DNA of 64,000 bases, taken from contig NC_092352.1 in assembly GCF_963676685.1 (NCBI RefSeq), positions 79,236,001 through 79,300,000 on the forward strand. Direction: 5' to 3'. Position numbers and translations under genes: made by a program. The stretch comes from Mytilus edulis (lineage: Eukaryota). The notes under the pieces were generated by a model. The model saw only the letters and a program-made list of their open reading frames with translations. It was not told where the DNA came from and did not search any database. Of this stretch, positions 1 to 63,431 are shown one piece after another (positions within the stretch are counted from its first letter, which is position 1; the number at the start of each line of letters is the position of its first letter).

Positions 1-210
1 AAAACGTTCTCAGATTGTGTAAAAACACGGTATACACTACATTACCATTAGTTTAGTATAAAACTATAAATTGATAAAACGTTTACCTAGCTACATCCAT
101 TCTTTCTCCAAAATCATTTTTAGCTGCAATATGTTAGGTTAAATATGCGTTATCTCTCTTTAATCAAAGATAAGTTTTATTCAAACTGTTATTTTTTTTT
201 TAGATAACTG

Positions 211-949
211 CTAGAACACACCCGTGATATCGCGGGTCCGTGACTCAATTAAAGTATATAACTATGCGCAAGCCTTATCTTAGTATTAGTACTGTCATCT
301 GATAAAGTCATGCCGATTATAAGATACACAATTTTCTCTGCTTTCAAATCTTTCTGTTTGAACCCGTCGAACTGGAACTTATCAATTATTGGTAATATTA
401 AATATTTGGAAAACAAAAGGTCCTGAAATGGAGTATTTTTTAATCAACAGCATTGTCCTATATTAGTTATAAATAAAGTTGAATTCTTTGATTCGCTGTT
501 TTACGTCATGCCCGCTAACAAATTGAAACTTATTTTTAGTCCAGATTTTTAGTATTCGTATTGTTATCTTAGAAAGTCTTACGGATTAAAATACTACAAT
601 AGGTAACAATTTGACAATTTAGTAGTGTCAACCCTGTGATTATGACCGGTTTATATAGCATATTAATCCTGAATACATCGTTTGGTGGTGCGCCTGTCAG
701 ATGCGGAACGTACAGATAAGGTCATAGGTAACAGGTGATTATACTATTGGTATCGATATCGGACTCGACCCGGAACTTCCTAATTATTGGCGATATTAAT
801 TACGTGGAAAACAAAAGGGCCTGGAGTGGTGTAATTTTTAATCTCCACCTTTGTACTATATTAGTTGTATATAAAGTTGAATTCTTTGATTCGTCGTTTT
901 TACGTGATGACGGCTGACAAAATGGACCTCGTAATTTTAGTATTATAGA
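211..949 (-). mobile_element. Non-autonomous Helitron-like element
   Basis: The minus strand starts TCTATAATAC (949) and ends with a GC-rich hairpin (CCCGCGATATCACGGG, 221-236) followed by CTAG (211-214), the Helitron 5'-TC/3'-hairpin-CTAG signature. Internal duplication at ~360-530 vs ~770-925. A diverged copy lies at ~54875-55570. Confidence 0.7.
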
Positions 950-5137: not shown

Positions 5138-5692
5138 GGAGGCTCGAGGGTATAAAAATTTCAGAAAAAAAATTAACATTTGTTTTTCATTTCAAATTTT
5201 ATTTGTTACCTTTTGTAGTTGCTGATTATCATATGGTACAAAAATAATTCCAAACAAAAGATTCGTGTTGGCCCCAGATGACTTTTAAAATGTATACATC
5301 ATTAAAAAAAGTTCCAAATTATCTCCCTTTGGTGGAAAAATGCCATTTTTTGGCTTTAAAATTGAAATATCTTTTTTAACTCATCGGTGACCTATATTTT
5401 TTAATTTAATTTCCATATAAGATGTACTTAAACTAAATAATTGTAAAAATTGAGCGATTTCTGTAATAAATTTCTTTCTTTTTTTTCGATATGACCTTTA
5501 TTTCTCCTATTACTTCAACAGAAAAAAAAACACCTTTACAAAAATGTATGCTTCTTTCGAAGGCAGGTTGTGAGCGCAAATGAACGGTGACCCCACTTTT
5601 TTATTTTATTTTTCTATTAACTATAAGATAAATTTCATTTATAAAAAAATATAGAGAAATCCTATATAAATGATTTAGACCCGCGAACCCCC
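5138..5692. mobile_element. Non-autonomous TIR DNA transposon with TTAA target duplication (Kolobok-like)
   Basis: TTAA|GGAGGCTCGAGGGTATAAA ... TTTAGACCCGCGAACCCCC|TTAA. Confidence 0.75.
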
Positions 5693-23010: not shown

Positions 23011-26000
23011 ATGATGAATGTTTTCTACTGTTTTATTCTAAATATTATGGGCGTACGGTACGGAATCGGGGGTAAGTCTACATACTTTACAATTGTAAGT
23101 GTAATTACATTTTGTCTGGCTTTTGATACAAATTGAATCGATCGATATACTAGTATGCTAACAACATTCTACATGTTTAAGTGGATTGAATGCAAATTAG
23201 CTGGAGTCCAGACCTCAATTTCTTATTTTTTTTAACAACGTTGCCATCTGTTATTCATCCGATAGCGAATTTGTGCAATGCCGATACTGATCTTTTGATT
23301 AAGTATCTATTTGAATTCCGGTTGATTTTTTGAATAAGCAGGCAAATCGAATGATATAATTGATGCACCAGAGATTGAATACATTTTTTAGATTAAAAAA
23401 TCAGTAAATTACTGCTGCTAAAAGAGAGAAAGATACCAAAGGGACAGTCAAACTCATAAATCGAAAATAAACTTTTCCATGGCGAAAAATGAAAATGACA
23501 AACAGACAAACAATAGTACACATGACACAACATAGAACACTAAAGAATAAACAACACGAACCCCACCACAAACTAGGGGTGATCTCGTGTCCAGTTACCT
23601 CAGGTTTGTAATGTGGCCTTATTTTCATTTCATTTGCTTGATAGATAAGAATAATAATCATGAATATACGGTTTTTTGTTCGAATTGAATATATAGTATA
23701 TCATCGTTTCGTGTGTATTTTAAAGTAGACGCCATATAATAAAGTATAAAGATTACCTCTTAAGACTGCCGATAGTCATATAAGCAATATACAATAGGGA
23801 TGCCCTCGAATCCAAAAATGTTTTAAACAAGTTTAAAAAAAAAACAAAAAAAACAAAAGCCAAATCAAGTACGGAGTTGAACATGTTGAAGCGCACTGAC
23901 GACAATACAAAACGTACAAATGCAAATACAGCTAAGGTAATCTATTCCTGAGGTAAATGGACATTGTGCATGCAATCAATTCACAGATCTAACACATTTT
24001 TTTGGAAAATACAAATTTAAAAGGTTGTTACATAAAAATAGAGAATATGTATCTTAACAAATGCTATAAACAGATTGCCATTTTGCTTTGTATTAGGGTT
24101 AGTTTTATCTGATTTTCAATGAATATAATAGCATGTATACATTATATTACAAAGTTGATTTAATTTATAAATTTTAACTTAGAGACATCTGTTATTGGCC
24201 GAGCTTTGAATCTGGACAATTAATTTCAATATGTAAACCAAGTGTAAACAATTAAAAGTGGCAGACTATGTGTCAAAATGTCACTGCAGGGAATAAGCTA
24301 CAATTGGTAAATTTACCTATCAACAAATCTTTGTTATATTTATGATGTTTCTTTTAGAGCAGCAGAATCTCGTGGTAAATGAGCATTTCTCGATATGGAA
24401 AGATGCATTCCCTTTTTGTAAAAATAGAACATACTGGCAACAACTATTACGTGACTGTCAGCCTGAATCATGCAATGTCAATAGTATCGCAGACAGTATT
24501 GTTGACATGCCAAAGCTCTGGGAGCAACAGTATTGGATATATGGATACGTATTAAGATCACCTGTCATTGTCAATATAGGTAACAAGAAATGAAAAAAAT
24601 GTGGTATGAGTGTGAATAAGACAAAACTTTAGTTTTATCATATTTTTGAAATAAGGGACTGCAAAATATTACGTTATAGATTTTCCTGATAATTCCTTGT
24701 AAAACAAGGATTATCTCAGTATGTTGTAAGCTGATAAGTGAACGCATCAAACGAAGCAATTTTCTTTTTTTCATGAGCACAAGACTTGTTTCGGATAACC
24801 AAAACAAACAAACAGAATTGTATGTGCAGCTAAAAGGACGAAGAAAGAATATAAAGTATCCATACAGTACACACAATCAGAACATGTACTGCGAAAACAC
24901 GCAAAAAGGAAGCAATAATATATCAGCACGGGAAACAAGCGCGTGTAATTAAATGTCTTATGATGAGATTGGTCCGGTTGATACACCAATAAATTCTTTC
25001 AAAAAGGCGTTTAATCATTTATTTATTTTTAAGTCTGTTTACTGGAAAAGTAGTTTATATTCATGAAATAATCATTTGTATTATTTTACATGGTTTTAGG
25101 ATGTGTCAGTTTAATTGCCAACTTCAGGAATACCTTTCATCAAAGCAACTTCTCATTTTTACCCAATTCAGCTTATGAATGCTCTAGGGCGTGCGAAAAT
25201 AACAGCGTGAAGTACATGTTCCTAAAGGTATATTTTTCCCATTGTTCAACACCTAATGCATTATATTTAACCACCGTTGAGGCATAGATCTGTTTATTAC
25301 TTCACAAAATGTATTTATCTAATTCGTTCTATTTATTCATTTATTTTTGTTTTGATTTAAGATGCGAGTTTTTATACAGAATATTTTTCGAGAAATAACT
25401 GTGTACACCAGATTCAAATTATCCTAGTATATAGACAATGATAAAACAAAATGTATAGACCCTTCTGAAACTTCCTTACGTTTGATGTATTGCAAGTGAA
25501 ATATTCAGTGAAAAATGTTGTTTATATTGAAAAAAATGTGCGTTTCACAAACTGTACATTTTAATAGGCGTATATGATATTTTAGGGTAGTGAATGTCTT
25601 TGTATTACTGGTCACAGATTCTCCGAAGAGATGACGAATAGTTATACAACAGTAAATATTGATGCTTGTAACATTAGCTGTATTGGAAACCATGGAGATA
25701 TATGCGGTGGTGATTCGTCTACTAATGGAAAAGTGTTATACAGTGTATACAAAATTATAAACAGTATGTATTTACAATCCACTACAAATGTATCATTCAA
25801 GAACAAGAAGAAAAAAAACAATACATGCATACATGTACAACATTTACATTTATACATGTTATAGACAGTGATCAATAAGTTTTTTTGTTTTAAATTCACT
25901 ATCCAAAAATAATCATTATTGATCATCTTGTAGTAGTAGTAGTAGTATTATAATCCTTTTATTTTTATTATAATTATTATTATTAGAAGTAGAGTATTTA

Positions 26001-29000
26001 TTTAAGAAATAATTGATGCCAGCTATACTTTATTGTAGTTTTAACATGGGTAGGCATTATATTCGTGATTATTTTTGCCAGAGCGATAGCGAGGGCTAAA
26101 ATAACACGAATATAATGCCTACCCATGTTAAAACTAAAATAAAGTATAGCTGGCATCAATTATTTCGATTCTGATTAGGACAATTACGGTAATTTCTATG
26201 TTCGCTGTGTATAAGTGTACGATCTTCGTGTAGGCTCTTCCATCAACCTCGCTGTCGATTTTTATCCAACTAGTTCAAACCAGTTTAATTTCGCAAAGTT
26301 GTAGGTTTCTAAAATTCAAAATTGAAACAGAAATTAACAAATTAATTTATCAGCCTAACTAAAACAATATTTGAGTCACAATATAACAGAAAATTTATAT
26401 TACAACAGTCTTTTCCTTTGAGGTCAATTTCTGACACGCACATTTTCAAGTCAGTTGTCAATGGCGGTGGACGCACAAGGAGAATCGGGTAGGTCTTTAT
26501 TTTACTAAATTAATCGTAAATATTTCGCCGGTTAATAGTGTAGCATTGGTAAATATGTTTATATTTGATAGAGGATTCCTTGATAAAGTTGTGCTGACAT
26601 TTGAGACTTGGAAGGAGGGGCCCTTTGACAGAGATCCATTTATACTTGCGGTGGCTACACCTTGTAAAGTTGATCAAAGGGCACGCCTTTGTGCATCTGA
26701 CGATTTCAAATGCTGTATTACATGATGATTAAAATTAATACTGGGTGACAATCTTGTTGCATTTGTAAAATGGATTGGAAACCTTGGTGGTATATTGGTA
26801 ATTACGCCTATTTTTTTTTATAGGAGAATGGGGTTCGATTCCCTGATAGGGTCAATCCATTTTATCAGAAATATATGAAACAATTTTGTCATTTCAGTAC
26901 AACAGTAATAATAACCTATACTTGATTTTATATTTTATCATCGGAACATATATTTCAATGAAATTATTCTATACAATGACATGCCTTTTTAAAAGGAGAG
27001 ATGAAACGTGTTTTTCAGAGGGAGGGGTTTTGAAGTTAGAACAGCCAACATGAACGATGCGGTATCTAGGTCAAATATGTCAATTACGAATTGTAACACA
27101 TTGTTGTCATTGTAAAAGTATAAGGAACAAAATGTGTATCATTTTAGTGTTTGAAAGTGGTTTAATTTAAGGAAATACATTAAATGCATATCAATTTGAC
27201 GAAATTCATTTTTCTGCCGTAGTCAATATACGCATGTGCAAACTAATTTTATTGGATAATAAAGTATGGTTTCTTTACAAAGCTTAAGAAGCACGTCATA
27301 TTAGAATTCTTTTTATTATTATTATTTTCATTCTAATTATCATTATTATTATTATTATAATTCCTATTATTATTAGGACTATATATTCAGCATAAAATAT
27401 TACTTGAAAAACAAAAGCATAATACATTCCATAAATTAGTTGAAAACAGGTTTGTTATCATTAAATAGTAATATGTAGTGATTTGTTTTATTTCAGGAAC
27501 CGAGTCTGACGGAATGCAGTTTGGGAGTACTTGTTCAGCAATTCAGTTTGATGAATCAATGAAAAAAAGTCAAAGCAAATACACAAAATGCAGTTCAACT
27601 TTGAACTATATCTGTGAAGGCTATAACAAGACAAGTACGTTTCAAAATGCCTTGTCACAAATCTCAAAATGTGGCTACTTATATTTAGTGTTTTATTCTA
27701 TTTTAAAAAAACAAGATATCAATTTTGCATGATGGTTATATGAGGAGATTATATACAAAAGGAAATAATTAGATAATAGTGACGATGAAATGAATATGCA
27801 AACTGAAATAGGTACGTCATTCTGGTTGATAAACAATGATTGTTTTGGAAATAAGTGCAACCAGAACGTATGTTGCAATTCCAACCTTTTAAAAAATGAA
27901 TAATCCGTCACTCAATTTCCGCGAAATGTCCAACAATATCATAAAGACATAAGAGCTACATGTCCGCAGATGAGTAGCAATTTACATGTTTAACGTGTTA
28001 TCAAATGCCTCATGAAAGAATCTGGCAATGTTTATATCATACTGAATAAAATGTGTTGCTCTAGACGTACTACAGTGTTAGTAATTAAATGCAAACCACA
28101 TTCCTATTGTGTGAGATACAAAAAGACAGTTCGATAAAATATAACACACGTATGATTTGTTATTTGGATTGCAATTCTTTTATGGCTGTTTTTACTTCAA
28201 AACATATTTGAATCCTAAATCGATTTTCTTTTCTTCTTCTTCCTTATTTAAGTGACATAGATTTGATAGTCAGGGCTGTATATGGACATTGTAGAGTATG
28301 AATGAGACATTAATGTATTCGATAAGTATAAGTTAAACGCAATATTTAAAGTGTAAAAAGAACTAAATATGCATGTTGTGACATACTTGTTGGTAGCTAT
28401 ATAAACCTCACCGTTGTTTTTATTGCATGGCTAATCATAAAATATGAATGGACTGTCAGCGAAAGTTCAGTTTGAAGAACATGAACCAGTTTGACTTTTC
28501 TTCTTTCGCCCTTTTGATGTGTCCTAAAAATTGGTATTTGTCTGGACTGAAACCTTTTTTATTCTGGAGTGAAATAAGTAACGTTGTATAATCTTTTATA
28601 TAATAATAGATAAAGAATTATTTGTTTTGCTTTTTTGTGACGATTAATTAACTGATACGTTATAAGTAGGTTAAGACACTTATATATCAATATGCTTCTA
28701 TATATTTTAGATGGAATATACCCCAAAGAGTGTAATACGGATAGAGTTTCTTGGTATACCGCTCAGCAAAACTGTAAAGAAAAGGGTATGCAACTGACTA
28801 GTTATTTACCTGATACTAAATGTCTGCGAAAAAGAGATTTGTTTTGGGTTGGAAATCATGCTGATGAAAACATACAATGGGGAGAAAATAGTAAGTGCCT
28901 ACCTATGTGTCATTCACCAGTAAAAACAAACGTATGATTTACAAATTTTAACCAATATTTACATAATAGTTATTGAAAAACTGGTCGTTATCGTGATATA

Positions 29001-32000
29001 TGGACTGCCCACAGGACAGTGGTATTGACTGAGACAGCGATAATGACTGAGCCAAAGGCCACCGTCCTACGGGCTGTCCATATATCACGATAATGACCAG
29101 TTTTCAATAACTATTATCTTTAAGCTTGTCTACTGACAACAGTCGTCTTCAATTCGGTTAAAGACATACTTTTTTAGCGTTTTTGTTCAGGAATGACTTA
29201 TGAACCGTTGAACCAATACTATTCGATATAATATGTTGTTACTGATGTTATAATGGAAGTCAAAGATTTACTACCGGTCAGTTGTCATGATCCTTTATAC
29301 ATTTGTATACGACATAGATACTTTATGTCATTTCCATTCACTAACGCTTGACGCAGTCAACCAATGCTTATTCAACTTTTGATATACATTTATTGGTTCT
29401 GAAGAAAAAAAGAATATTGTGTACGACATTGACAATGTTCACTTTTGCCGTTCAGAACATTGATAAATTGGATAATAAGTACAGAACGCGGAAGGTCAAA
29501 CAAATTTGAAAGCGCTATATATACATGTAACATTATATCAATTTTTTTGCTAGATGCACTTCTAAGTGATTACCTTTAAGATATAGAAAAAAATAGATGC
29601 TGTTACTTGACAGCTCATTGCATGTTAAAAATACTTTTTCTTTGTCTGTACCAATCTGAATACTTAATGCTCCTCTACTATGTTTTTTATTCACTCTATC
29701 AAAACGAATCTACGGAATCAATATTTTCAATAAAAACAAAATAAACAATCACAGAGACTGATTACTAAAAAAGAAACGTAAGCATAAATGTTACTCTCTA
29801 TCCTTTTTAATATATCATAGATATTTCAAAACTTTAAGAATTTAGTGATTGATTATTTTTCTGTTTGTATATCTGTGTATTTCTTTTCTAATCATTACAC
29901 ATATATTTTTTCTTATATGTCTCAAATCTCGTTTTCACATTATCATTCAGGACATTTACCAGATGATGCGCTTTGTCTCAAGATAGTAATTAAAGGATCT
30001 GAAATTCGATTAGAAACAGAGAAGTGCAGGAGTCGACTAGGTTCTCTTTGTTGTGAGTTCATAATTTATTTCATTTGATCACTGTATGTATTCATTTTAT
30101 CAAATTTTATCAAATTGGCTTACTTAAAAGTTACCATAAAGATTTGAAGATATTGATTACAAATTACATTCCAAAAAGACAAATAGGCCTCGATAAGGTG
30201 TTCCCAATTTTAAGGATATACATTGTAAAAACCTAGGCAATCTAGCATGTTGCAGTTAATAACTAATGTTTGTTTTTATTGAATTACTTAAACTGTTGGG
30301 ATTGATAAATAATATATCTTTTTCAGCTTAACGTTTGAAAGGGTAATTTCAATCATGATAAAACAAGTGTTCAAGAACTCAAGTCAATATTAAATCATTT
30401 AGTTCTTGGTCAGCTTAACATTCAAAAACCTTAAATGTACCAAAAACAGTCCTGGCATGTAATGTTGTCATTTAAGTATTATATTTTACATGGCCATAAA
30501 GGCGGAAGGTTTGACTAGCCATAAACTATATTTAACCAACCATTTTTGTTTTCTTAAAATGTCCTGTACCAAGTCAGGAAAATGACAATTGTTATCTTAT
30601 AATTCGTTTCTGTGTATGTTGCATAGTCGTATGGTTTTTTGTTGCACTTTTAGTGTTTCTGTTGTTTTCCCTTTTATATTTGATATGTTTGCCTCATTTT
30701 TAGTGTGTAACCCTAATTTGTTTTCTCTCAATGGATATTTTGACATTCGAACTGCAGTAACTACTATTGCCTTTTATATAGCATATGTATTCCCGATATT
30801 GAAATACTTATTTCTGGTGCTAGTTTTTGACCGCATTATATTCATTTGGTTGTTTAACATTAATATCGAGCTTTATGCCCGTCAGTTTTTTGAATTAAAT
30901 TGATGTTTTGTTTAATTTGTTTCTATTTTTTCATTTATCAAAATAAGACTGCTGCATCAGTGTTTCATTGAGACTGCAACAAACGATTAATATCAAATTA
31001 TACCTGATCCTCATTTTTTGTCAATATACCTTTTGGACCTTTTAGATTATAGCTCTTCACTTTTTATATAAACTTTGGATTTCAAATATTTTGGCCACGA
31101 GCATCACTGAAGAGACATGTATTGTCGAAATGAGCATCTGGTGCAGAAAAATTTGTACCGTTAATGTTATTACTATCGATAAAACACAATTGTGTGGCAT
31201 ATTGGTAAACAAGTGTGTAGTCACGTCTACGTACAAACATATACATTCTTAATCCAATGTCATCCAAAATAGGTTTTACGGGAATAAATGTATTTATTGC
31301 TATGTTTTCCCTTTTTATATAAGTCATCTGTTAAGGTTATTTTGTCATACCCTGTAGTTCTCTTTATTCTTTTTTTGTTGTTATAGAATTAAAATGTGTC
31401 TTTACATCTATACAAGAAGACGCAAATTCTAACGTATTGTTTTCATTGTTTAATAGCCCATATTTCCGATTGATAAATGGATTGGAAGGATATTTTTTAT
31501 GGAATTGAATGTTGGTAATAGACATTCATATGATAACAAAACTCTGTTTGATTTCATATAGTTTTTCCCTTTGCTTTAACATGTTTAATGATTTATATCA
31601 TGTATATTTTGTCGCAGATACTTTCAACATCTCATCTGGCGACAAGGGAACTACGAACCCATACAGTTCAACCATTTCAGCGGTAGAAAATAGTTCTACA
31701 GGTGAGTGCTGTATATAAAAAAAAATGTAATTTAAAGTTATTTTCCATTTGTATTTTTTGTAATACCACCAAATCATAGTACATCACATACGGTTGTATA
31801 CGAAAATAGTCCGAAAAAAAAAACTTTGAGATACGGTGGTATTGTCACTAAATAGAAGCTCCTTCATAACATTGGATGTTACTAAAGGAGTAGGTCCGGC
31901 AAGGCCGATTTTGGCCTCAAATTTCAGGTTCATCTTACAAAAGATTTTAGAAATTTTTTTAACACTTAAGTGTCTATTCCAATCGATTCAATTAGTTTAG

Positions 32001-35000
32001 GTGAAAGATTTTAACTGATTTAGTCATGAAAAACGCTCCGATTTAAGCTTAAATATGACAAATCTATCAAATATGCCAAAAAACGTCAATTTTTAGATGG
32101 TTTTTGTCAAAATTGAAAGTGGCCACATCCGTGTTAATCCTTAACCTTTATATATGTTATGCAATATCATCAAATACAACTTACATTTCAATATTATGCA
32201 TGAACACAAATGCGGCAACTTTCATTTCAGACTGAAAAAATTGAACTAAAATGCTAAAATTGTGAAGATTTCGGTAATTTAGCATGAATAAATGATTCTA
32301 GTTCCCGGTATATGTGCATTGTATTGTCAAAAACAGCCCATATTTATGTAGCAGAAGCATTCTACTTTTCAGTTAATAGCTAGAAGATTACATTTTCACA
32401 ATTTTGTAAAACTGCTATATTTTGGGGCCAGAAAGGGGTATTGCTGAACCTACTCCTTTGTTTCTTGCAAAAAAAATGGTATAGAATAGTTGTTCCAACA
32501 TGACAGATGATATGGCATTGTAGATGAAAACGTGTGCAAATGTAAGACTGAACTCTTATATCCTGACAGTGTTATGATCGAACAAAGTAGTTAACGTATG
32601 CTTTCTTTCAAGTTTTTGTCGATGCTACGAGCTGGCCATAATTAGTCGAAAACTGTGTGCGTTTAGGTACATCAAGATTCAACAGCATTCGTTCATTTAT
32701 AGAACCGATGTATCAAGATCGATCTATTCCTCAAAATATCATGATTTTTTAATTGTACTTGTTTACACAAAAAAAAGAATCTAGACTTCAAACATAAAAA
32801 CTTTGTTCAATAATATATTAAAACATGATTTACGTTTATATACTAATAAAATTCAAAAAGGTGCATTCAATGCTTCAATGTCTAATTAAACTATAAGATA
32901 ATAAGAAAAATAAAATGTAAAAGTAATCTTACAGAAGGCTATATTTCTTGAATATTGCTCACCAAGAATGATCTACACCAATCTTTTGGAAGTAGAAAAA
33001 ATAACAAAGAAGCTACCAAAAAGGAATACAAAATATAATTAAAGGTATTATGTTGTTGAAAACCATCTATTGAAACTTGATATGTTTTAATTCCAAGATG
33101 ACCATTTTGATGTTTACGTAATGTTGTCGTATGAATATCTCGACCAGACTCTAAATGATACAGCAAGACAAACAACCCTTTTTTTATCATTCTTTATGTC
33201 GTACCGCTAATTCTTGTATAATTCAATTAATACTAAGCGTGGAGTAAATACGCATTTTTTTTTTTTTTTAAATAATGTAAACCAGAGTCAGCCATTTCAT
33301 TTTTTTAGCAAAGTGTTTATAGCAGAAAATTTTAATAAGATAATTATGATTGTTAAATTAAACTTTATCTTTACCATGAAATTTCATAAGAAATCTTTAT
33401 ATTTTTGTTTTAGTTCCAATTGTAGCTGGGAGTGTAGGGGGAATTCTAGGAATTGTGATCATCCTAGTGATTTTGATAGTTATCAAAAGAAGGTATACAT
33501 TCCCAATATGTTAGTTTGGTAAATTATATCATCGATAGGGGAGTTATATTATTTGACTGCTTTTATTGGTCGTGTAGAAGTTTGTATTTCAGTCTCAATT
33601 TACCTTTCTTGTATTTAAAAGAATTCAAAATTAAGAATAAATACATTCATCTAATAAGTTAAACACAAACCTACATTACAGCACTTTAGTCTAAATTGAA
33701 TGTTCTGTGGTTTGACTGACTTACAGTTAACTATGATACATTTAGTATAACAATGTTTTAAAGATAAATGTACTGAATAAAATGCCATTGAGACACTGAA
33801 CATTGTATAATTCTTATATCATTTGCATATCTATAAATACTTAAATTGGATTGGTCAATTCGAATTTTTCTCTTGGTTTACACTTCGATAACAGATGTTT
33901 CCTAAACTACTTTCGTAATCTATTTATGCGCGATACACATTCTTGCAGGGATACTGGGATTTTCAGCAAATTGCGATTACAAAACAATTGCATAATAGTT
34001 GTTTCTATTCTAATGCATATATAACCAAAACAAAATAGAAATAAAACAAATGCACTAAAGCTTCGAAAATGTATAAAAATAAGATTTAAATAAAATTCAG
34101 CGAAATTTTACGAAGGATTTGCCGAGTTTACTTTTTGGCATAACACGACGTCATACGGGTGAAAATTTTCAAGGGAAAGATTATTTCGTTACGTGTGCGC
34201 TTCAAATTTGGATAGTTATATTGAATAAACGTTAAATTCTCCCTCGCCATGCTCGTCCGAATTTAAAACATTTCTTTACTAAATCCTTGGTATAATAAAT
34301 AAAACAAAACTCTAGATATAGGTTTAGTTGCTCGCAGTAACTTCGTTTTTCTTTTCTAGTAAGCAATGTTTAATAACATTATAAACCAACATATTATAAA
34401 TACAAACACATTTGTCCAATACATTTAAATGGCCTATAATTAAACAATTCATAATCATATATATGTACACATTCTTATGACATAATAAACTGCAAAAACT
34501 GTCGTAGTTACTGTGAGCGAGCACTTTCGATAAATGACACCCGCAAATTTTCTTTATATAATATAACGGGACCCCACTTTTTAAACCGCCAAAGTATTTC
34601 ACGAGCATATTTTACCCATCTATATTTATAACCAAAACAAGAACTTGTTATACAACTACTCTCACTAACCAACCTTGAACTTATAAATAGTATCACAGGG
34701 GAAAAACCCCAAGTCTCAACGAAAAGAAATTTAATTAAATTCTCCCTCGCCATGCTCGTCCGAATTTAAAACATTTCTTTACTAAATCCTTGGTATAATA
34801 AATAAAACAAAACTCTAGATATAGGTTTAGTTGCTCGCAGTAACTTCGACATATCAAAGGAATAAATGAAATATGAATTAAATGCCAAGATTCAAAGAAA
34901 CTGCCATTTGTGATTGAATATTATCTTTTATGTAACCATCTTTAGATCTATCGGATGACCAACGACCGTGAGCTTTCAGTAATCTCTCTGAAATACCAAA

Positions 35001-38000
35001 ATTAGCTGCAGTAGAAGCCCCACCACTTCTTAAACTATGCAAACCAAATTTGCTCTTATCTAATCCTATAGATTCCAATGCCACAAGCAAAATCTCTCGT
35101 GCCCTAGTGTAAGAAAGTGGAGAATTCTTACTGCACAACTTATGAATGCCTCGAGTTTTTAAAAAACACAATGCGCGGAAAATATACTGATCAGAATCTA
35201 ACTCAATATTAGCTAACTGCATATATCTTAATAACCACTTAACGGGACAAAGATTTCCTCCGGTTTTAGAAATAATAACTGTACTACCTCGCCTATAAAT
35301 ATCGGTTTTACTCTTTTCTAAAAGAATAGACATATAACTAACAAAAAAGGTAATATGTTTTGCCTTTATAGCAGCTAATTCACTGTATCTTAGGAAACCT
35401 GAAAAACCTAATAAACATAACACGCATATTCTCAAACTAGACAAATCATTCTCTATACCATATTTAGAAATAATCATCTGTAAAATTTCTGGTGTGACTG
35501 GTTCTTTTTTATTTATGGGCTTACTTAAAATTCTTTTACCACCCTCGACAATCAAGGAAAGAAATTCATCTGAACAAGGATTGTCCTTAAAGTTCTTATC
35601 ATGATGCCATTTAATAGAATAATAATTAGCCTCCAAAACTGACACACTAATTCCTTGCTGAATGAGTCCACCAATATAAAGCGAAATAGTAGTAGATGTA
35701 GCTGGTGAATACTGTAGTCCGAACAAAACACACCATTTCCGAAATTTTTCAAAATAAATACGATATTTATTATTAGTAGACTTGGCTTTAGATGATTCTA
35801 TAATAGACGGTAACACTTCAATCACACTGGCTAATCTTGGATTATTGGCATAATCTTCAAACTGTTTCCATTGAGACTATAAATAGAAAAAAGAATAAAT
35901 GAAAATCAAAATTTTTGAATGATATCTGTATACATAAATTTAACTATACAACATTCCATGGTGCACTTTGCAACCAATCACATCGCTCCCAGCGACCTAA
36001 TAAATAATGTTCATACATTATAATAAATAATGTTCATACATTACAACATTCCATGGTGCAACTTTGCAACCAATCACGTCGCTCCCAGCGACCTAATAAA
36101 TAATGTTCATACATTACAACCTTCCATGGTGCAACTTTGCAACCAATCACGTCGCTCCCAGCGACCTAATAAATAATGTTCATACATAAAATTTCACACT
36201 CATTTGTAATTCATACATTTCATAAAATTAAACATTAGCTAAAATCAACTAACAGTACCAACACGTGACTGTTAAATGGCTGTTTTGCAAAAATACTGTT
36301 GTCATGTGATCCAGCCACAAAAAAGTTTTTTGGATTTTTATGTTCTCTAAAATCCTTTACAAATTTTTGATAAATGTCAGTAAAACGATCTACAATTCTA
36401 GGCCAAAAAATGGCAGACTTCCATTTCGGTACTACTAAAACACCTTTGGCTTTGCACATCTGCATATGATTGATTGCCCGAGTAATTAAATTAACAGGAG
36501 GAACTACCCAATTATTAAATTTTGACCAATCATATGCAAATGCATCTACACCTGATGTACCTGGAGTAAAAAAATTTGAAAAGAATACAGCTAATTTCTT
36601 ATTTCTGTCGTCTGCAAAAGTATCACAAGTAAATGGACCCCATAAAGAATTAAAAAAATTGAAAATATTTCGTTCCTAGGTATCCATTCTACTTCTAATA
36701 CTATATTGTTATTTAAACATATGTGAAAAATATCTAATGCTATAACTTGTAAGTCTAATTTCATGCTACCTTTCTGTACAATTTTAACAACATTCTGATT
36801 GTCTGTATAAAGTTTAATAAGTTTTCCGCATAACATTAATTGTAATGATTCTAATATATTTTTGACAGCTTTTAATTCTCTCCAAGTAGAACTCTTAATT
36901 CTGTCTTCCTTATCCCACATAAAATGTACAATATGGTTATCACCTACAGTAAAACCTGCGCCAGCATATTCACAAGCGTCTGAATATATAATTCGTTCAG
37001 GTAATCTAAACATCGGAGTTATACATTTAAAATATAATTTTTCGCACTGAAAATACCAAAATCTGAGTTCTTGTAAAATGTCGTCATTTAAATGTATAAA
37101 AGAATCCCAATATATCCTAGTGTTAATCATCATATGCAAATGTCTAGTCATAATTTGACAAATAGAACCCAATGCTGGTTTCATGGATATAATTTTACCA
37201 CAAACTTTAGCTAAATTTCTACAAGTTGGTCTAATCGTACCTTCTAATAATGCAGAAATGCACAATTTCAAACCCTGAAATTTTTTATTTGGTATTTCTA
37301 ATGTACTATTATATAAATTCCAAATAAATCCCAACCATTCAATACTCTGTTGTGGTGTCCACACGTTTTTAATTTCATTAGCAACAAAACCAGATTTTTT
37401 CAAATCAGCACGAATCTGATTAGCCATTTTTGTACATGTATCAAAATCAATAGCTAAACCAAAACCATCGTCTAAATAAACTATGATGGGATAACCCATA
37501 GATCTCCAATGTTTAACTAAAACTCTAACTGTCTTAGTGAAAATATGACCAGCTGATGATAAGCCGAATGGTAAAACAGAAAAAGTATAATATCTGATTT
37601 TGTTGCCAAATTTCCATGAAAAGCCTAAATATTTTTGGTGATCATCATGTATATCAATATGGTGATATCCCGACCGAAAATCAAATTTATACCCATATTC
37701 AGCGTTAACTGCATAATTTAACGCTTCATTAACACCCTCAAATTTCACCTTTTGTTTGTCAACATATTTATTAACATGACGTAAATCAAGTACTAATCTC
37801 ATTTTACCTGAACTTTGTACAGATACCGTTAAAGGGTTCACAACAAAAGGTGGACATGTGACTTCTTTAATACAATGTGAGTCAAGTAATTCGAATATGG
37901 ATTTTTCGACAATATCTGAATATTTAATAGCAGACATATTATTTCGTAAAAATGCCATATTCGGTTCACTAACAAAAGGTATTCTATATCCTAAATTTAT

Positions 38001-40562
38001 TGTATTAATAATAAAATCATTTGCGCATAAAACATTTTTCCAGAACTCAACATTTCTTCTTAAATTGCCTTTGACATTAATAAGTGTTTTTCCCGATTCT
38101 GTCTCATAATTGTTAATAATATCAAAACTATACTCAACTTCATTAATAACTGATGACTGTGTAGAATTCACCTCATGTTGATTTTGGCAACTGTTCTTTT
38201 GGTGAGCTGACTGTTGCAGATGGGGCTCCTTTGAATGGACAGGCTCTTGCGAAGTGACCAGGTTGGTTGCAGTAATAGCACACTGCTGATTGGAAATTGC
38301 TGTTTGGTTTACCACGGTTCCCGTCATTGGCGTTGAATTGGCTAAAGCCACGAAAAAATTCTTTGGTGTTGAATTTTGTACCGTTGTTGTCTGCACGGCT
38401 ATAACCATTTGTTGATTTTTCCACCGGACGATCATATGGTTTGTAATTCCTTCTCCTTGAATTAGCTCTGGTGATCGCGGATCGTAAGTTGGCGGCATCG
38501 TCCTTATCATCAGCCAAAGGACTATCCAAATACTCATTAACAGTATCCCACCCATGCTTATCGGCAATTTTAAGAATTTTGTTGCGTTTTCTTAATGTCT
38601 CTTTCTCTTCTGAAATAAGGCGTGATGCGGCGTCCAAAGAATTAAACTTAACAAAACTGTCAATTTTGGACAATTTTTCCGAACGTTCAATATTAAAAAT
38701 GTGTTGAATGCGGTTACCTTCCTTCTTGAATTTAAAATCTGTTGCATCTACTCCAGTAGCTTTCTCCGACTTCTCGTTCGCAAAACGGCTCTCAAAATGT
38801 TGAATAATGTTGTTCTTTTGTTGTTCTAACGCATTACTCAATACGGTAGAGAAGAGTGACACAGCACCGTCTGTCGACAAATCAGTATTAACACCACTGG
38901 ATTCTGTAGGATCTCTCACATCTAGATCTGGATCGGAGTTTGACATAACGTAGTCAGGAAAAAACTGCAAAAACTGTCGTAGTTACTGTGAGCGAGCACT
39001 TTCGATAAATGACACCCGCAAATTTTCTTTATATAATATAACGGGACCCCACTTTTTAAACCGCCAAAGTATTTCACGAGCATATTTTACCCATCTATAT
39101 TTATAACCAAAACAAGAACTTGTTATACAACTACTCTCACTAACCAACCTTGAACTTATAAATAGTATCACAGGGGAAAAACCCCTAGTCTCAACGAAAA
39201 GAAATTTAATTTTTGAGGTAGGAGCTATTTCATTTTAGATTCTGATGCATTTATCAGACATTTATTGTTTTTAGAAAGTTAAGATGGCGGCGTTCTCCTT
39301 AGTTACTCTCTTACTCACAAACTTAGCATAAAAGTCCTTATTAATCCTATAATAAGTATATTTGTGCTTTTGAAAACATTCTAAACATATATTGTTGTGG
39401 ATGATAAACAAAGTGCGAGCTCAATAAACAAACAGGTAACACATTATTGAAGAAGCTGTTTGATTATTCTAAAACGCATTAGAAACATGTGCAAAATACA
39501 TTACAATTAAAATAATTTAATAAACAACTTGGAATAGACAGTAAAATTAGAAACCATACTTATAACACTACAAAATTCATCTTTTTGACTTAACTTCTTT
39601 TTGATATGTTCGTGTTGCATAGTATTATTATTCTATGTTGTGTCAGTTGTACTATTAATTATCTGTTGTTTTTATTTTCTTTATTAAGCCATGGCATTGT
39701 CAGTTTATTTCCGATCTATGCGTTTGACTGTCCCTCCGGTATATTTTACTGATGTCCTTGTCATTTTCTATTTGACAATAGGATACATATTTTGAAATGA
39801 ACATACATACAACAATGCTTGGCAAATGTAATATAAATTGAATTTTTCAGCCATCCGATATTCCAAAGAACTTATTGTACAATCCCACTGGTCCACCATT
39901 GTGAGGCATAATTCATGCATACCTTTTCAGAACCGATCATGACGTTCCGATAGACTGTGGATTATCATGGTGTGTAATGCAACCATATATATATGGAGAG
40001 GTTTATACTTTCCATGGACCCAAATTCTTTCCTTTTTGAAACTATCCGATTCCTCTGTGTCGTTTCTTACCTTCAAGTTTATCTTTTTTTTTTTTAGATT
40101 TATCATTTTTATGTATTTTTCGTGTGAGATTATTTTAGTTTGTTTTTGTAGTGATTTTCAAATAATAATAAACTGAATAGTTTTCATTGTTTTTTAAACA
40201 GAAAAAATCAAAACCACAAACCTATGAATACAACTGTTGATCAGAGACAGCCTCATTCTTACTCGGAGCCTATCAAGAATACCATTCAAGAGGACAGTCG
40301 GAAATTAGTCAATGTTACAGAAGAAGGAATCTATAATCATTTGGGAGACTCAGAAAAAATGATTGAGATGAAACCACAAGATTCGTCAATATATGATGTA
40401 ACAGGAGATGATGAATACCACGTGTTTACTGGGAGTGGAAAACAGACCATAAAACACGATGATGACATGTACGATCATGGTGCCGCAAGTGAGGTTTACA
40501 ACACATTGAATGACACTGTGACGACAAATAGACCTGAATCAGACACATACAATGTAAAATGA
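23011..40562 (+). CDS. Type-I transmembrane C-type-lectin-like/WSC-domain receptor with tyrosine-rich cytoplasmic tail (paralogue 1; 10 exons, 510 aa)
   Basis: Exons 23011-23071, 24358-24579, 25100-25227, 25586-25763, 27497-27634, 28711-28890, 29951-30052, 31618-31701, 33414-33492, 40202-40562. All introns are GT-AG and the phases (1,1,0,1,1,1,1,1,2) give a 1533-nt open frame. It encodes a signal peptide, an 8-Cys WSC domain, CTLD motifs, TM PIVAGSVGGILGIVIILVILIVI followed by KRRK, and a tail with YSEP/YNHL/YDVT/YHVF/YDHG/YNTL/YNV. Confidence 0.85.
24358..24579 (+). CDS. Receptor 1 exon 2: N-terminal half of a C-type-lectin-like domain
   Basis: WKDAFPFC ... YWIYG. Same length (222 nt) as, and homologous to, 53159-53380. 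Confidence 0.85.
25100..25763 (+). CDS. Receptor 1 exons 3-4 (25100-25227, 25586-25763): WSC domain
   Basis: GCV..ECSRAC..YMFLK|GSECLC..CNISCIGN..DICGG..SVY, with eight cysteines in WSC spacing. Confidence 0.85.
26006..26166. repeat. Long near-perfect hairpin at the end of an intronic insertion (probably to ~27308) in (TAT)n-rich DNA
   Basis: GAAATAATTGATGCCAGCTATACTTTATT..ACATGGGTAGGCATTATATTCGTG / CACGAATATAATGCCTACCCATGT..AATAAAGTATAGCTGGCATCAATTATTTC. Confidence 0.9.
27497..27634 (+). CDS. Receptor 1 exon 5: C-terminal half of the first C-type-lectin-like domain
   Basis: TCSAIQF ... TKCSSTLNYICE; phase 1-1. Confidence 0.8.
28711..30052 (+). CDS. Receptor 1 exons 6-7 (28711-28890, 29951-30052): second C-type-lectin-like domain
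   Basis: SWYTAQQNCKEKGMQLTS..FWVGN | ..LCLKI..EKCRSRLGSLC; no EPN/QPD or WND motif. Confidence 0.8.
28963..29117. repeat. Long hairpin/foldback (intronic)
   Basis: ATAATAGTTATTGAAAAACTGGTCGTTATCGTGATATATGGAC / GTCCATATATCACGATAATGACCAGTTTTCAATAACTATTAT. Confidence 0.9.
31101..31144 (+). ncRNA. Minimal type-I hammerhead ribozyme motif, second subfamily
   Basis: GCATCA-CTGAAGA-GACA(TGTAT)TGTC-GAAA-T(GAGC)A-TC^TGGTGC. All three stems covary relative to the 12269 copy. Confidence 0.8.
31884..32459. mobile_element. Non-autonomous TIR DNA transposon (Kolobok-like MITE)
   Basis: AAAGGAGTAGGT ... ACCTACTCCTTT termini. Confidence 0.65.
33414..33492 (+). CDS. Receptor 1 exon 9: transmembrane helix
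   Basis: tttag|..PIVAGSVGGILGIVIILVILIVIKR|gtatac. Its reading frame differs from the overlapping ORF-track entry. Confidence 0.85.
34878..35876 (-). CDS. Tyrosine recombinase (phage-integrase family) of the PAT-like element
   Basis: GFLRYSEL, SKTD, HSLRSGGA, HGRW and DGY catalytic motifs. The frame is open from a splice-acceptor-like site at 35877 and has no N-terminal ATG. Confidence 0.92.
   Translation of the reverse strand, partial: SQWKQFEDYANNPRLASVIEVLPSIIESSKAKSTNNKYRIYFEKFRKWCVLFGLQYSPATSTTISLYIGGLIQQGISVSVLEANYYSIKWHHDKNFKDNPCSDEFLSLIVEGGKRILSKPINKKEPVTPEILQMIISKYGIENDLSSLRICVLCLLGFSGFLRYSELAAIKAKHITFFVSYMSILLEKSKTDIYRRGSTVIISKTGGNLCPVKWLLRYMQLANIELDSDQYIFRALCFLKTRGIHKLCSKNSPLSYTRAREILLVALESIGLDKSKFGLHSLRSGGASTAANFGISERLLKAHGRWSSDRSKDGYIKDNIQSQMAVSLNLGI
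35948..36187. repeat. Three ~73-bp tandem repeats between pol and YR
   Basis: Units start at ~35948, 36043 and 36116. Each has a GTCGCT-CCC-AGCGAC hairpin (one mismatch in unit 1) and CCAATCA. Confidence 0.9.
36235..38567 (-). pseudogene. RT - RNase H - methyltransferase-like pol of the PAT-like element, frameshifted near 36670
   Basis: RT: LVLDLRHVN, FDFRSGYHHI, LPFGL, YLDD. RNase H: YSDA, WRELKAV, YTDN, WIPR. A second frame then reads WGPFTCDTFA..GVDAFAYDWS..NWVVPP..LVVPKWKSAIFWP (MT-like domain). Confidence 0.9.
38173..38946 (-). CDS. Gag-like protein of the PAT-like element
   Basis: ATG at 38946 (MSNSDPDL); RNKILKIADKHGW; CCHC knuckle CYYCNQPGHFARAC; overlaps the pol frame. Confidence 0.88.
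   Translation of the reverse strand: MSNSDPDLDVRDPTESSGVNTDLSTDGAVSLFSTVLSNALEQQKNNIIQHFESRFANEKSEKATGVDATDFKFKKEGNRIQHIFNIERSEKLSKIDSFVKFNSLDAASRLISEEKETLRKRNKILKIADKHGWDTVNEYLDSPLADDKDDAANLRSAITRANSRRRNYKPYDRPVEKSTNGYSRADNNGTKFNTKEFFRGFSQFNANDGNRGKPNSNFQSAVCYYCNQPGHFARACPFKGAPSATVSSPKEQLPKST
40202..40562 (+). CDS. Receptor 1 exon 10: acidic tyrosine-motif cytoplasmic tail
   Basis: Acceptor ..ttttaaacAG; phase 2 matches the TM exon; seven Tyr in acidic contexts. Confidence 0.85.
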
Positions 40563-48261: not shown

Positions 48262-51200
48262 ATGACAATGATTGCTGCCTATTGTTTAATTCTAAATACC
48301 TTTGTAATGAGATATGCAATAGGAGGTAAGTCTTTGGAATTCATTATATATATTAAAAGGTAAAACACTTCTGTGTCGACATGAATTATTATTGATGTGA
48401 TCATAACTATAAATAAGCTGTTAAAAAAACTATTAATAGTAGGAGAAAATATTTCCTACTTTAGCATGTATAGGGATTTATTTCCTTAACTGTATTAGGC
48501 AAAAACTTTCAGATTGTTTTCCCTCTATGCTCCTCAACTTCGCTGTTTATATGCCCTTTTCACTTTTTTGGCGTGTCACTGAAGACCAGTTTGTAGATGC
48601 GATACGCATAGACCCAGTTGTTCATATATGGTTATATTTCAATCAAACATATCTGCTCAATTTGATTACTTATTGAAACAATACACTTTAAATCTAAGTC
48701 TTATTTTTTTCTAAACGCGGATGTGACAGAGAAAACCTTTTATTTTGATTGAAAAGAAGCGATGATCGTAGAATTATATTTGATTATAGATAAATACATA
48801 TTTTAACTCAAATATTTTGTTGTATCAATTTGTTTGTTGTAATAGAAGATGACAAAGTGAAAAAATGATGATTTCAGAATGTTTGTTCGATAGACACAAT
48901 GAACGGAAATCACGATGGAAAAAGAGGGAATGACTATCAAACAGTTTGTGTCCTTCCCATTCTAGTTATCAACAGGAAATCTTACTTTAAGCCAAAACTA
49001 TTCCTTGGTTTGACTTTGAACGTAGGTCCGAAGCAGGGTTAACTATTTATAATTTAACCGATAATTACACAAAGGGATAAATTAAACTACAGGATAGATA
49101 TATATATATATATATGAAAGAAAAAAAGACTAGGGTTAAAATTTACTAAGTGATGAACAGCCGGGCTTAGTGTATTAAATCATATTTATGTGTGTCTTTT
49201 GTGATTATTTTATATTTGGTGTATTTACAGAGTTAAAACAATTACAAAATATTTATATTTTTTACCATTGTCATGCAGCTGGGGCTAGCCATTAAACCAG
49301 GTTCAACCTGCCGTTTTATCTTAAAATGTTCTGTACCAAGTCATGACTGTTTTTGGATGTGACATGTGTTACTGTATTTTGCTGTATCTTTGGAGATTAT
49401 TGCTATATATATCAGAAGATGTGGTATGAGTGCCAATCAACAAACGGTTACATGTCCTTTGATCAACAAACACTTATTAATACATCAGCTACAAGAACAA
49501 CAACATTTTGGCAATATAGTTTATCAATAAGTTGTATGTATTTCAAACGGTGCCGATTGGTTATCCATTTATAACAGCAGAATTGTTCCTTTGTAGCTAT
49601 TACAGATTTTCAAGTATAAATCATTACTATTACAATGAATAAATATTTGTAAAGAGAATGTCTATAAGTGTCAGATAAGGAAATAGTCGAGTGTGGGTGT
49701 GCGTTGATCAAGTATCAGGAAGTACTAATACTTCTGGAGTGGTAGGGTTTACTATTGACGGTTTTTTTTCAAACTATTTTAATCTGAGCGTAACTAAATT
49801 GTCTTATAAAGACGAAACGTGCGTCTGGCGTATTAGATTATAAGCTTGGTACCTTTGATAACCCTTTGATGCTCTCGCTATGTATAAATATACAATCTAA
49901 CCTTTTAAATTATCAAAACACACTTCCATTCGGGATAAAGAATAACATGACAAACTATATTACAAAAATAAGAAAAATATTTAAACAGTATTCTACCCGA
50001 TCCCCAAAGTGCAATCGGTTGGGAACATACCACCAAAGATGAAAAGCTAAAACTTCGGGCATTGTACGACGCGTATATTTTGTAAATAATTTCTTCAATC
50101 AACCAATTTGTTAACGTGACCGTGAGTAGAGAATTCTGTTATTCTACTTGAAAACTTATAAATTAAATATGGATACAAACCCTTTTACTTTTATATTCAC
50201 ACCACACATAAAAATTTATAAGTTTTAATAACTTAAAATTGTGTGGAGTAGATTTCGGGGAATCAGAAATAAACAGCATAGTCAAACATTTCCGCAAACT
50301 TTTACAATATAAGGATACTAATCATACACATGTGTGTACATTTCATCTTTTAATCTCCTTAACATAGAAACTACAGTTAAGGCAACCATGTCATTTGATT
50401 CGACAGCAATGAAGCACATATAAATCTTCCGTGATGTACGGAACTACATGTATGCAAATCTTCCGTATGGTAGGAAATGACATTGTGTACATGTGAATCT
50501 TCCATGAGTTACGAAAAGGTAAACATACAGACCTTCTATTATAGGTACGAAAAAGTCTGCCATCAAATACGAAATGGTATACTTGTTAATATTCCATGAG
50601 TACGACATGGTCAAGACTCAAAAGGGTCAGGGTACAAAATGACTTTTTCAAGAATCAGAGAACGAAATGAATATAATTCGACATGACCACAATCTTGGTT
50701 TTTTTTTGCCTTAATGGTTTATTAATACATTCATATTTGTTAGGTGTGAATAGACAATTATTATTGACATGCTAACCAACTTTGTCCCTATGCTTGTCGA
50801 CTTGATCGTATATTGTTATGAGGCAAATTTCATACATAAGCTTCGAAACGATGAAAAAATCTGGCAATTCCCCCAAATTCACTTATCTTTTGTTGTCATG
50901 TTGTAAGTCTAAATTAAAACTTACATATAGTATCGTCCTTTTCTATATTCGTTCTCTTTATAACTCTTGATTATGCCATGTCTAATTGTATTTGAATTTA
51001 ATCTTTATCTGAGGGGAACATATACTTTAAACAATATCATCAGAAATCGCCAAAAAATATTGCACAGTAAAATGCCCGTCTCTCTAAAAAAAATCAAAAA
51101 AATCAACAATAAAAGAGAGGCGCATGAGGACATTCAAATTCATAGAAAGAAAATAAAATTACAAAATTGCTAAAATAAGAAAATGATCAACAGACAACCA

Positions 51201-62833: not shown

Positions 62834-63431
62834 TTATACTTCCGGGAAACGCCGAATTTTTTTAGATGATAGGAAAGTTTCAATACCCCCTTGTATGTTG
62901 TTCAAGTATATATCATAACCAATATCGGATAAGTGAGTTCCGTCATATCTATACAAGTTCATCTCTCGAGCTCGGATATTAGGATGCTGAATAACACAGT
63001 GCCCATCATTCAAGGCATAATTGTTAATAGCCGAGTTTACTCGTTTTCGAGATCTTTCGATAGCTTTTCCATCTGTAGCACCGTGCCAATACCTTCGCAT
63101 TAGCATTTCGCTCCATACGATGCGAGTGTTAGGTACAAGTAAATGCAGACGCAGAATATCCCTTTCAATATTTTGGATGAGTTCCAAAGTTTTAACTTTT
63201 ACCAGATCATTGGAACCAAGCTGAATGATTATCATGGCGGGAGTAGAAATTTGTCAACTGCATGGGATACCTTGGCATTAAAATCATTCCACAACATACC
63301 CCTTTTTCCAAACCAGCGTATGTACACCCCTCTGCTTTGAAGACCAATGTTTGGGCCCCCGTATCTCGTTTTTGCATTTGTCTGTGCCCAATATACAATT
63401 GAAGATCCGACGAACCAAATAGCTTTTGAAC
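62834..63431 (-). pseudogene. SGNH/GDSL hydrolase-like ORF (one frameshift near 63245)
   Basis: Block I IWFVGSSIV, block II WFGKRG, block III QLGSNDL, block V YDGTHLS. Confidence 0.85.

Follow-up and report, generated by a model that had tools for sequence, protein, structure and literature searches.

A Mytilus gene for a type I membrane protein with a WSC domain probably nested within a C-type lectin domain

We have analysed a 64,000-nt window of the Mytilus edulis genome (the whole stretch of DNA under study, contig C9:79236001-79300000, forward strand), in which a ten-exon gene, here termed gene A, encodes a type I single-pass membrane protein. Coordinates are positions in this window unless marked otherwise. 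Gene A is a real, spliced, transcribed and conserved Mytilus gene. Its exons E3 and E4 encode a complete WSC domain, a module of sugar-binding type, and the flanking exons E2 and E5 carry, as judged from their sequences, the candidate N-terminal half and the C-terminal third of a C-type lectin domain (CTLD1); a second predicted CTLD (CTLD2), a stalk, a transmembrane segment and a tyrosine-rich cytoplasmic tail follow. We consider it likely that the WSC domain is truly nested inside one CTLD, an arrangement that is well supported by gene structure and not by structure prediction. No paper describing a WSC domain inside a CTLD was found in the literature searched; the architecture is undescribed, mis- or under-annotated, and is built of known kinds of component, namely those of CTLD receptors and WSC proteins.

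Gene structure and splicing of gene A

Gene A extends from 23011 to 40562 on the plus strand, in AT-rich animal DNA (~31% GC in the window), and its exons (E1 to E10, Table 1) total 1533 nt, corresponding to 510 codons and a stop. All nine introns have GT..AG ends and compatible phases, no internal stop is present in any of the ten exons and none is created among the eight split codons. Seven of the nine introns are in phase 1, the intron within the WSC domain being in phase 0 and that preceding the tail exon in phase 2. The proposal of an earlier reading of this DNA (the original prediction) that the ten exons splice into one 510-aa frame is thus borne out by the introns, their phases and the open frame. 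The C-terminal end which it described is also observed, E8 being Ser/Thr-rich, E9 a hydrophobic transmembrane segment and E10 a tail with seven tyrosines. Identification of the E9 segment is based on transmembrane-type Pfam matches, transmembrane similarity and a helix in AlphaFold2 models of the paralogue P0013, while the leader encoded by E1 is kept in the homologues P0013, P0014 and P0016.

Splicing was investigated by comparing four public runs, marked as RNA only by guess ("RNA?"), with positions 24300-30100. Spliced contigs of run X1 contain the joints 24579|25100 (E2-E3), 25227|25586 (E3-E4) and 25763|27497 (E4-E5), exactly as predicted, while the joint 27634|28711 (E5-E6) is present in contigs of runs X1, X8 and X10 and the joint 28890|29951 (E6-E7) in contigs of X1 and X8. 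All five contig-supported joints have GT..AG ends, the supporting runs come from different studies, and a single 383-nt contig traverses E4-E5-E6. The junctions which the original prediction wished to see in RNA were thus found from E2 through E7. For the remainder of the gene, the M. galloprovincialis protein P0024 is 91-100% identical to E6-E10 per exon and has the same joins, with the split-codon residues Y, V and R agreeing, and the E1-E2 join (split codon GAG, encoding E) fits the G-[DE]-Q-L consensus of full-length homologues. A processed retrocopy was considered as the source of the joints and rejected: in the 1.37-Gb M. edulis assembly that was searched, E5 matches its own locus only, and E6 and E10 match only paralogous, intron-bearing loci. 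The joints therefore reflect splicing despite the guessed RNA label, because the genome lacks an intronless copy able to yield them.

No canonical joint skipping the WSC domain (E2 to E5) was observed in contigs of the four runs over 24300-30100. The sole candidate, 24479 to 27617, has non-canonical AA..TG ends, comes from a single contig with 21 nt on one side, and was rejected as an artefact. A joint from the end of E3 into mid-E4 (25228 to 25674), with non-canonical TA..CA ends and three extra letters, is present in one X1 contig of depth 8.7 and may represent an assembly artefact or a deletion allele. Coverage of 25852-27403, a stretch of intron 4, reaches depths of up to ~900 in all four runs, and variants and internal joints are numerous; this is a repeat, dispersed and transcribed, and not a part of gene A. 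Intron 9 contains a DIRS-like retrotransposon (34484-39211) with minus-strand open reading frames (ORFs) at 34878-35825, 36591-38567 and 38173-38970, in which Pfam detects a gag ORF with a zinc knuckle, a reverse transcriptase and a tyrosine recombinase. Its ends are 253-nt direct repeats (34484-34736 and 38959-39211) that are 99% identical, from which the insertion looks recent.

The WSC domain, CTLD2 and the split CTLD1

The assignment of E3-E4 as a complete WSC domain is solid. The domain contains three cysteines in E3 and five in E4, the eight columns being conserved in 11 of 11, 12 of 12 or 11 of 12 family members. Exons of gene A were searched singly, natural full-length homologues being used in place of the joined 510-residue protein, and under these conditions the WSC profile of Pfam matches E4 only, and weakly, with 16.2 bits over positions 48-82 of its 82. 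Among 13 family members the WSC profile (PF01822) matches ten, with a best E of 2.1e-7 and with P0013 reaching 26.5 bits against a cut-off of 27.8; PF01822 is also precomputed for eight homologues. The fold was tested on the paralogue P0013, not on gene A itself. Residues 83-200 of the AlphaFold2 model match glyoxal oxidase (9n3u, Z 9.5), Kremen1 (5fws, Z 9.0, and 9vfr, Z 8.9) and Wsc1 (7pz2, Z 8.9), the next rows, at Z ≤5.3, being PAN/apple domains, and Wsc1 7pz2 is also the top Foldseek match for the P0013 model (E 2.5e-3, template modelling score 0.64). Combined, the conserved cysteines and the fold match of the paralogue bear out the full eight-cysteine WSC domain that had been proposed for exons 3 and 4.

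Profile comparisons provide solid grounds for predicting that E6-E7 encode a compact CTLD. Against a reference profile built from 17 bona fide single-exon CTLDs of the M. edulis genome, CTLD2 aligns with a probability of 93.8% (hhalign, E 1.7e-7, 91 columns), all four core cysteines being aligned, and none of 40 column shuffles equals this score, in agreement with the proposal of a second CTLD uninterrupted by any domain. Its best sequence match in the PDB (profile search) is CD94/KLRD1, E 0.0014. Six cysteines are conserved in CTLD2, and only ~21 residues separate its WIG strand from beta3, as in a compact CTLD without the Ca2+/sugar loop. CTLD2 bears an intron, and no inserted domain, at the point that corresponds to the WSC insertion in CTLD1. 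As the original prediction had stated for both CTLDs, no EPN, QPD or WND motif is present in E2, E5, E6 or E7 of gene A.

Sequence comparison also identifies E5 as a genuine C-terminal third of a CTLD. Its alignment with the 17 canonical M. edulis CTLDs covers the beta3-beta5 third (hhalign, E 7e-5 to 1.7e-4), and the E5 score of 26.3 is reached by none of 60 column-shuffled versions, which score 8.2 +/- 1.9. Indeed, Pfam Lectin_C (PF00059) weakly matches the E5 equivalent of the M. coruscus protein P0002 (15.4 bits, profile positions 74-107), one of two among 13 family members with a match at E≤1. Exon 5 had been read as the C-half of a CTLD (C...C....YICE), and this is borne out in the form of a C-terminal third. 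For E2, the assignment as a CTLD N-half is marginal on the same type of comparison. The motifs W-x2-[AS]-F-x2-C, the CQPxxC loop and YWI.G.V are invariant down to the distant paralogue E, and the spacing, W-x6-C followed by ~38 residues to YWI.G, is within the range of canonical M. edulis CTLDs. Compared with the N-half of CTLD2, the hhalign score of E2 is equalled by none of 100 and none of 80 shuffles. Deep conservation favours, in terms of sequence, the W..AF..C register for helix 1 of E2, which is that of the original prediction.

The relationship between E2 and E5 was investigated with the WSC columns removed. E2+E5 is then collinear with CTLD2 over 87 columns (hhalign, E 0.022), and the E2|E5 boundary coincides with the E6|E7 intron, lying ~12 residues past the WIG strand in both domains. 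The WSC fold pairs its eight cysteines internally, and CTLDs hold a canonical C1-C4 bridge. In gene A, three conserved cysteines in E2, eight in the WSC domain and three in E5 are present; E5 supplies C2, C3 and C4 of CTLD1, and E2 a candidate for C1. If the WSC domain pairs internally and all cysteines are bonded, the odd counts require at least one disulfide between E2 and E5, which would be the C1-C4 bridge. In the P0013 models, the WSC segment is flanked by its own first and last strands (residues 90-99 and 187-197), which suggests, at the level of these models, the arrangement that an inserted domain requires.

The Mytilus family and the history of the insertion

A WSC unit in the M. edulis genome is typically encoded by two exons, one for profile positions 1-47 and the other for 41-82. 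The units of a multi-WSC gene on contig C3 each begin and end in phase 1, and their internal intron, in phase 0, separates the "AGVE" part from the "G.EC.C" part, a layout equal to that of E3+E4. Exon shuffling of a two-exon WSC cassette into a phase-1 intron in the middle of a CTLD is the simplest history, and the frame is kept after insertion because a symmetric 1-1 cassette enters a phase-1 intron. The cassette may plausibly have come from multi-WSC repeat genes of this genome, such as those at C3:34.16-34.40 Mb and C6:31.29-31.36 Mb, which share with gene A the two-exon 1-0-1 unit and the same intron position. Their units are arranged head to tail and score 40-56 bits, whereas the gene A WSC domain is divergent, with 16 bits on E4. 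It had been proposed that the WSC domain replaces the long loop of the CTLD. The site is indeed that of the long loop, but the equivalent loop of CTLD2 is already short without any insert, so that the WSC domain was added to an already compact CTLD and no long loop was replaced.

A phmmer search with E2 against 1.8 billion representatives detected 10 proteins, the real ones being exon-sized fragments and the full-length 551-residue P0002. Further searches gave ~15 clusters, all from Mytilus (coruscus, californianus, edulis, trossulus and galloprovincialis), and no family member outside Mytilus was detected at the sensitivity of the protein searches, which is not proof of absence. Public names are "uncharacterized" or "WSC domain-containing", P0024 being named "C-type lectin domain-containing". 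Orthologues of gene A are present in M. galloprovincialis and M. californianus, although the public collections hold no full-length gene A protein, only the partial orthologues P0022 and P0024. Paralogues B and C keep the order E2, WSC, E5, CTLD2, and so do full-length proteins of M. coruscus, M. californianus, M. trossulus and M. edulis. This order is old within the lineage because the distant paralogue E also keeps it; here the E5 position is occupied by a C-x12-C-x7-C exon to which the family E5 hidden Markov model gives no significant score. Public models P0012, P0016 and P0023 (M. coruscus, M. edulis) skip E5, which leaves an odd number of ectodomain cysteines. These models look like annotation misses rather than isoforms, B having an E5-like exon in the genome.

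Among A, B and C, the ratio of nonsynonymous (dN) to synonymous (dS) divergence in ectodomain exons is 0.17-0.34, with dS of 0.9-2.2; pooled over the ectodomain, A and B give a dN/dS of 0.17, with dS saturated. At the level of coding sequence, this indicates long-standing purifying selection on every part, E2 and E5 included. Gene A belongs to a tandem cluster of paralogues that share its exon order, and the further copies and exons of the family are listed in Table 1. No transmembrane or tail exon of copy B was found anywhere in the assembly, and this copy may be decaying, may encode a secreted or decoy form, or may be spliced to distant exons. The broken E2-like exon upstream of the window is a pseudogene fragment of the cluster, because its TAG is in frame and no other family exon is present within 25 kb of it.

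Intron 2 of paralogue B contains LINE (long interspersed nuclear element)-like reverse-transcriptase fragments at 56513-57379 (+) and 57712-58407, after which comes a tandem repeat with 3.8 copies of a 161-bp unit (92% matching). Two minus-strand ORFs, 62837-63235 and 63508-63861, give a weak GDSL-like lipase match of 29.5 bits (below cut-off) and a weak tyrosine recombinase match of 19 bits, and are probably parts of another mobile element.

Table 1. Exons of gene A and further family copies
Feature	Position	Strand	Details
Gene A (copy A)	23011-40562	+	Complete, 10 exons
E1, start codon and hydrophobic signal-peptide-like leader	23011-23071	+	20 codons + 1 nt, ends in phase 1
E2, candidate CTLD1 N-half (W..F..C, CQPxxC loop, YWIYGYV)	24358-24579	+	3 conserved Cys; phase 1-1
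E3, WSC first half	25100-25227	+	3 Cys; starts in phase 1, ends in phase 0
E4, WSC second half	25586-25763	+	5 Cys; starts in phase 0, ends in phase 1
E5, predicted CTLD1 C-terminal third (beta3-beta5; C...C...YICE)	27497-27634	+	3 conserved Cys; phase 1-1
E6, predicted CTLD2 N-half (C..SW..A...C, FWVG)	28711-28890	+	Phase 1-1
E7, predicted CTLD2 C-half (C2, C3 and C4 cysteines)	29951-30052	+	Phase 1-1; 91% identical to P0024
E8, Ser/Thr-rich stalk	31618-31701	+	Phase 1-1; 93% identical to matching part of P0024
E9, transmembrane segment, then basic stop-transfer KRR	33414-33492	+	Ends in phase 2; 100% identical to P0024
E10, cytoplasmic tail	40202-40562	+	7 Tyr; 119 full codons + split codon, then stop
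Copy B	48280-60733, running past window end	+	A-like exon order through E7 (tblastn with gene A exon peptides)
Copy B exons	E1-like 48280-48324; E2-like 53161-53379; WSC 59986-60105, 60566-60733	+	
Copy B E5-, E6- and E7-like exons	L006 (C9:79300001-79310000) 4303-4410, 5333-5494, 7083-7178		Beyond window end
Copy C	C9:79370195-79392953		Complete; encodes P0013
Broken E2-like exon	C9:79181259-79181465 (L011 5262-5468)		In-frame TAG; 55 kb upstream
Copy E (distant)	C9:70.44-70.47 Mb	-	~9 Mb away; E2-like (29-44% identity), both WSC, CTLD2-like, transmembrane and tail exons

The conserved tail, related systems and alternative explanations

The tail is the best-conserved part of the protein, with a mean pairwise identity in the family of 0.81 compared with 0.46-0.65 for parts of the ectodomain. 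Seven tyrosine columns are conserved (ETYSEP, EEGIYNHL, SSIYDVT, DEYHVF, DLYDHG, DVYNTL and DTYNV), EEGIYNHL being kept in 11 of 12 family members, and the distant paralogue E keeps EEG[IV]YNHL, YDV, LYD, VY[ND]T[LI] and DTYN. Between A and C, tail dN is 0.076 and dS 0.42 (E10 40203-40559 vs L010 2561-2953), compared with an ectodomain dS of 1.34 for the same gene pair. Gene conversion may homogenise the tail among the tandem copies, adding to constraint. Divergence of the ectodomain between paralogues with a constant tail fits, from these sequence comparisons, a diversifying recognition receptor feeding one signalling route.

Several known systems resemble gene A in part. Members of the Dectin-1 cluster (Dectin-1, CLEC-2 and CLEC9A) are also single-pass proteins having a CTLD without Ca2+/sugar motifs, and their YxxL preceded by acidic residues is imperfectly resembled by EEGIYNHL. 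However, they are type II proteins with an N-terminal tail and one CTLD. The gene A protein is of type I, its tail is C-terminal, and it has two CTLDs, an inserted WSC domain and six more conserved tyrosines; no sequence relationship is detectable beyond the CTLD fold. The Dectin-1 analogy of the original prediction is, given the type I topology and C-terminal tail, a loose one. The compact CTLDs of natural killer (NK) type (CD94/KLRD1, Ly49 and LLT1) share with CTLD2 a short loop region and the lack of a Ca site, LLT1 and Ly49 heading the fold list for the first P0013 model (Z 7.9-8.4); they differ in being vertebrate type II dimers without an inserted domain, and their match scores are weak. 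Yeast Wsc1 has, like gene A, a WSC head, a Ser/Thr-rich stalk, one transmembrane segment and a cytoplasmic signalling tail, and vertebrate Kremen1 is a type I protein with a WSC domain; the structures of both are among the WSC fold matches given above. In contrast to gene A, neither has a CTLD, their WSC domains are free-standing and their tails are unrelated to the gene A tail. Polycystin-1 (PKD1) and sea-urchin REJ proteins combine WSC and C-type lectin domains in one ectodomain (PMC9672506, PMC1934368). In these very large proteins the two domains are side by side, not nested, and are accompanied by PKD, REJ, GPS and 11-transmembrane channel-like parts. Pfam detects no REJ, GPS or PLAT domain and no multi-pass C-terminus in 13 members of the gene A family, which have a single transmembrane segment.

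Alternative explanations of the architecture were weighed against nesting. E2 could be an unrelated disulfide-bonded N-terminal module and E5 a vestigial CTLD relic of some earlier rearrangement, now packed on the WSC domain or CTLD2 or serving as a linker, and a number of results point in this direction. In comparisons of E2 with canonical CTLD N-parts, 7 of 100 and 2 of 80 shuffles equal its score (hhalign, E 0.03-0.06), helix 1 takes different registers against CTLD2 and against canonical CTLDs, a PDB sequence search with the E2 profile returns no match at E≤10 and an ESM Atlas search with E2 no usable match. Pfam gives no significant match to E2 either: Lectin_C has no match on single exons of gene A and stays below its cut-off of 22.6 bits family-wide, the best score being 17.1 bits (P0013, N-part of CTLD2). 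Of the proposal that exon 2 is a CTLD N-half, the motifs W-x-x-A-F-x-x-C and YWIYG stand, while similarity to canonical N-parts is marginal. The AlphaFold2 models of P0013 are weak, with mean predicted local distance difference test (pLDDT) values of 49.6 and 53.3 (13-row and 29-row alignments, respectively). In the second model, residues 1-78 have pLDDT <50, yet E5 reaches 70-86 without a confident E2, and the CTLD matches cover only 238-297, corresponding to CTLD2, with none over E2 or E5; the CTLD matches of the first model, extending over 8..347, are not assignable to CTLD1. Thus no structural match covers E2 and E5 together, and the closure of E2+E5 into one CTLD, for which structure prediction had been suggested as a check, is not seen in the P0013 models. 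Complex prediction between P0013 residues 21-94 and 198-243, equivalent to E2 and E5, gave no answer (score 0.01) and counts neither way. However, a beta3-beta5 piece of a CTLD is unable to fold alone, and E2 has the right length to complete it, 74 + 44 residues giving 118, the size of a compact CTLD. In addition, E2 holds both N-part hallmark motifs at canonical spacing and invariant across deep paralogues, scores above all shuffles against the CTLD2 N-half and, with its odd number of conserved cysteines matched by that of E5, calls for a bridge, while the insertion point is the intron position of CTLD2. These considerations make a non-nested architecture unlikely. It is far less probable still that gene A is an artefact in which exons of neighbouring tandem copies are mis-joined, or a decaying, non-functional gene. 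The cluster does have a copy broken by an in-frame TAG (C9:79181259) and a copy B lacking transmembrane and tail exons, public models of relatives are often truncated or without E5, and the kind of the runs is only guessed. Against this stand the five exact GT..AG joints in up to three runs, the contig through E4-E5-E6, the 510-codon open frame, the orthologues in M. galloprovincialis and M. californianus, the purifying selection and the genome without a retrocopy.

A different question is whether the nested architecture is correct but its role non-immune, for example in adhesion, matrix or mucus sensing, gamete or larval-settlement recognition, or Wsc1-like stress sensing. This is the less probable course, although a serious one. 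The best structural relatives of the WSC domain are not immune receptors, Wsc1 being a mechanosensor, Kremen1 a Wnt co-receptor and the third a glyoxal oxidase; polycystin-1 and the sea-urchin REJ proteins, in which WSC and CTLD also occur, are not immune receptors either; and dN/dS is <1 overall, with no positive selection in the tests run. Lineage-restricted tandem expansion, a fast-diverging ectodomain on a constant tyrosine tail and NK-receptor-like CTLDs without a Ca site (best PDB match CD94) speak for recognition instead, each being typical of recognition or immune receptor families, although these points are circumstantial. The putative role of gene A as an immune glycan sensor is plausible.

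An exon-shuffled, nested WSC/CTLD type I receptor with a composite Ca2+-independent surface and a phosphotyrosine tail is the best explanation of the whole and, in our judgement, a somewhat probable one. E2 and E5 would together form a single compact CTLD, in which a disulfide links the helix-1 cysteine of E2 to the last cysteine of E5, and the WSC domain would protrude from the usual ligand face of the CTLD to form a composite, Ca2+-independent surface for a ligand, probably a carbohydrate. Clustering of the receptor by its ligand would cause the tail tyrosines to be phosphorylated, possibly beginning with EEGIYNHL in its acidic context, and SH2 proteins to be recruited. We infer the ligand, the Ca2+ independence and the signalling from the family properties of CTLDs, WSC domains and YxxL motifs. 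A bolder version, in which a "lectin within a lectin" composite site makes the protein a mollusc-invented pattern recognition receptor with signalling to a Syk- or Src-type pathway through additional phosphotyrosine motifs and an acidic YxxL like that of a hemi-immunoreceptor tyrosine-based activation motif (hemITAM), is quite unlikely. In a hemITAM, a single YxxL closely follows a triacidic stretch of the cytoplasmic tail, DEDGYxxL (PMC3576117), and by comparison EEGIYNHL has two acidic residues only and an extra residue before the tyrosine, in a protein of type I topology.

The analysis adds an uncharacterised, Mytilus-restricted receptor family, whose public models are often truncated or without E5 and in which domain databases see at most the WSC domain. 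Gene A is also a clean natural example of domain insertion, the counterpart intron being still visible in the neighbouring uninterrupted CTLD. The bolder version, if true, would represent an independent origin of Dectin-1-style signalling outside vertebrates, in one exon-shuffling step. In molluscs, where very little is known of tyrosine-based receptor signalling, the conserved tyrosine tail provides a handle on this process.

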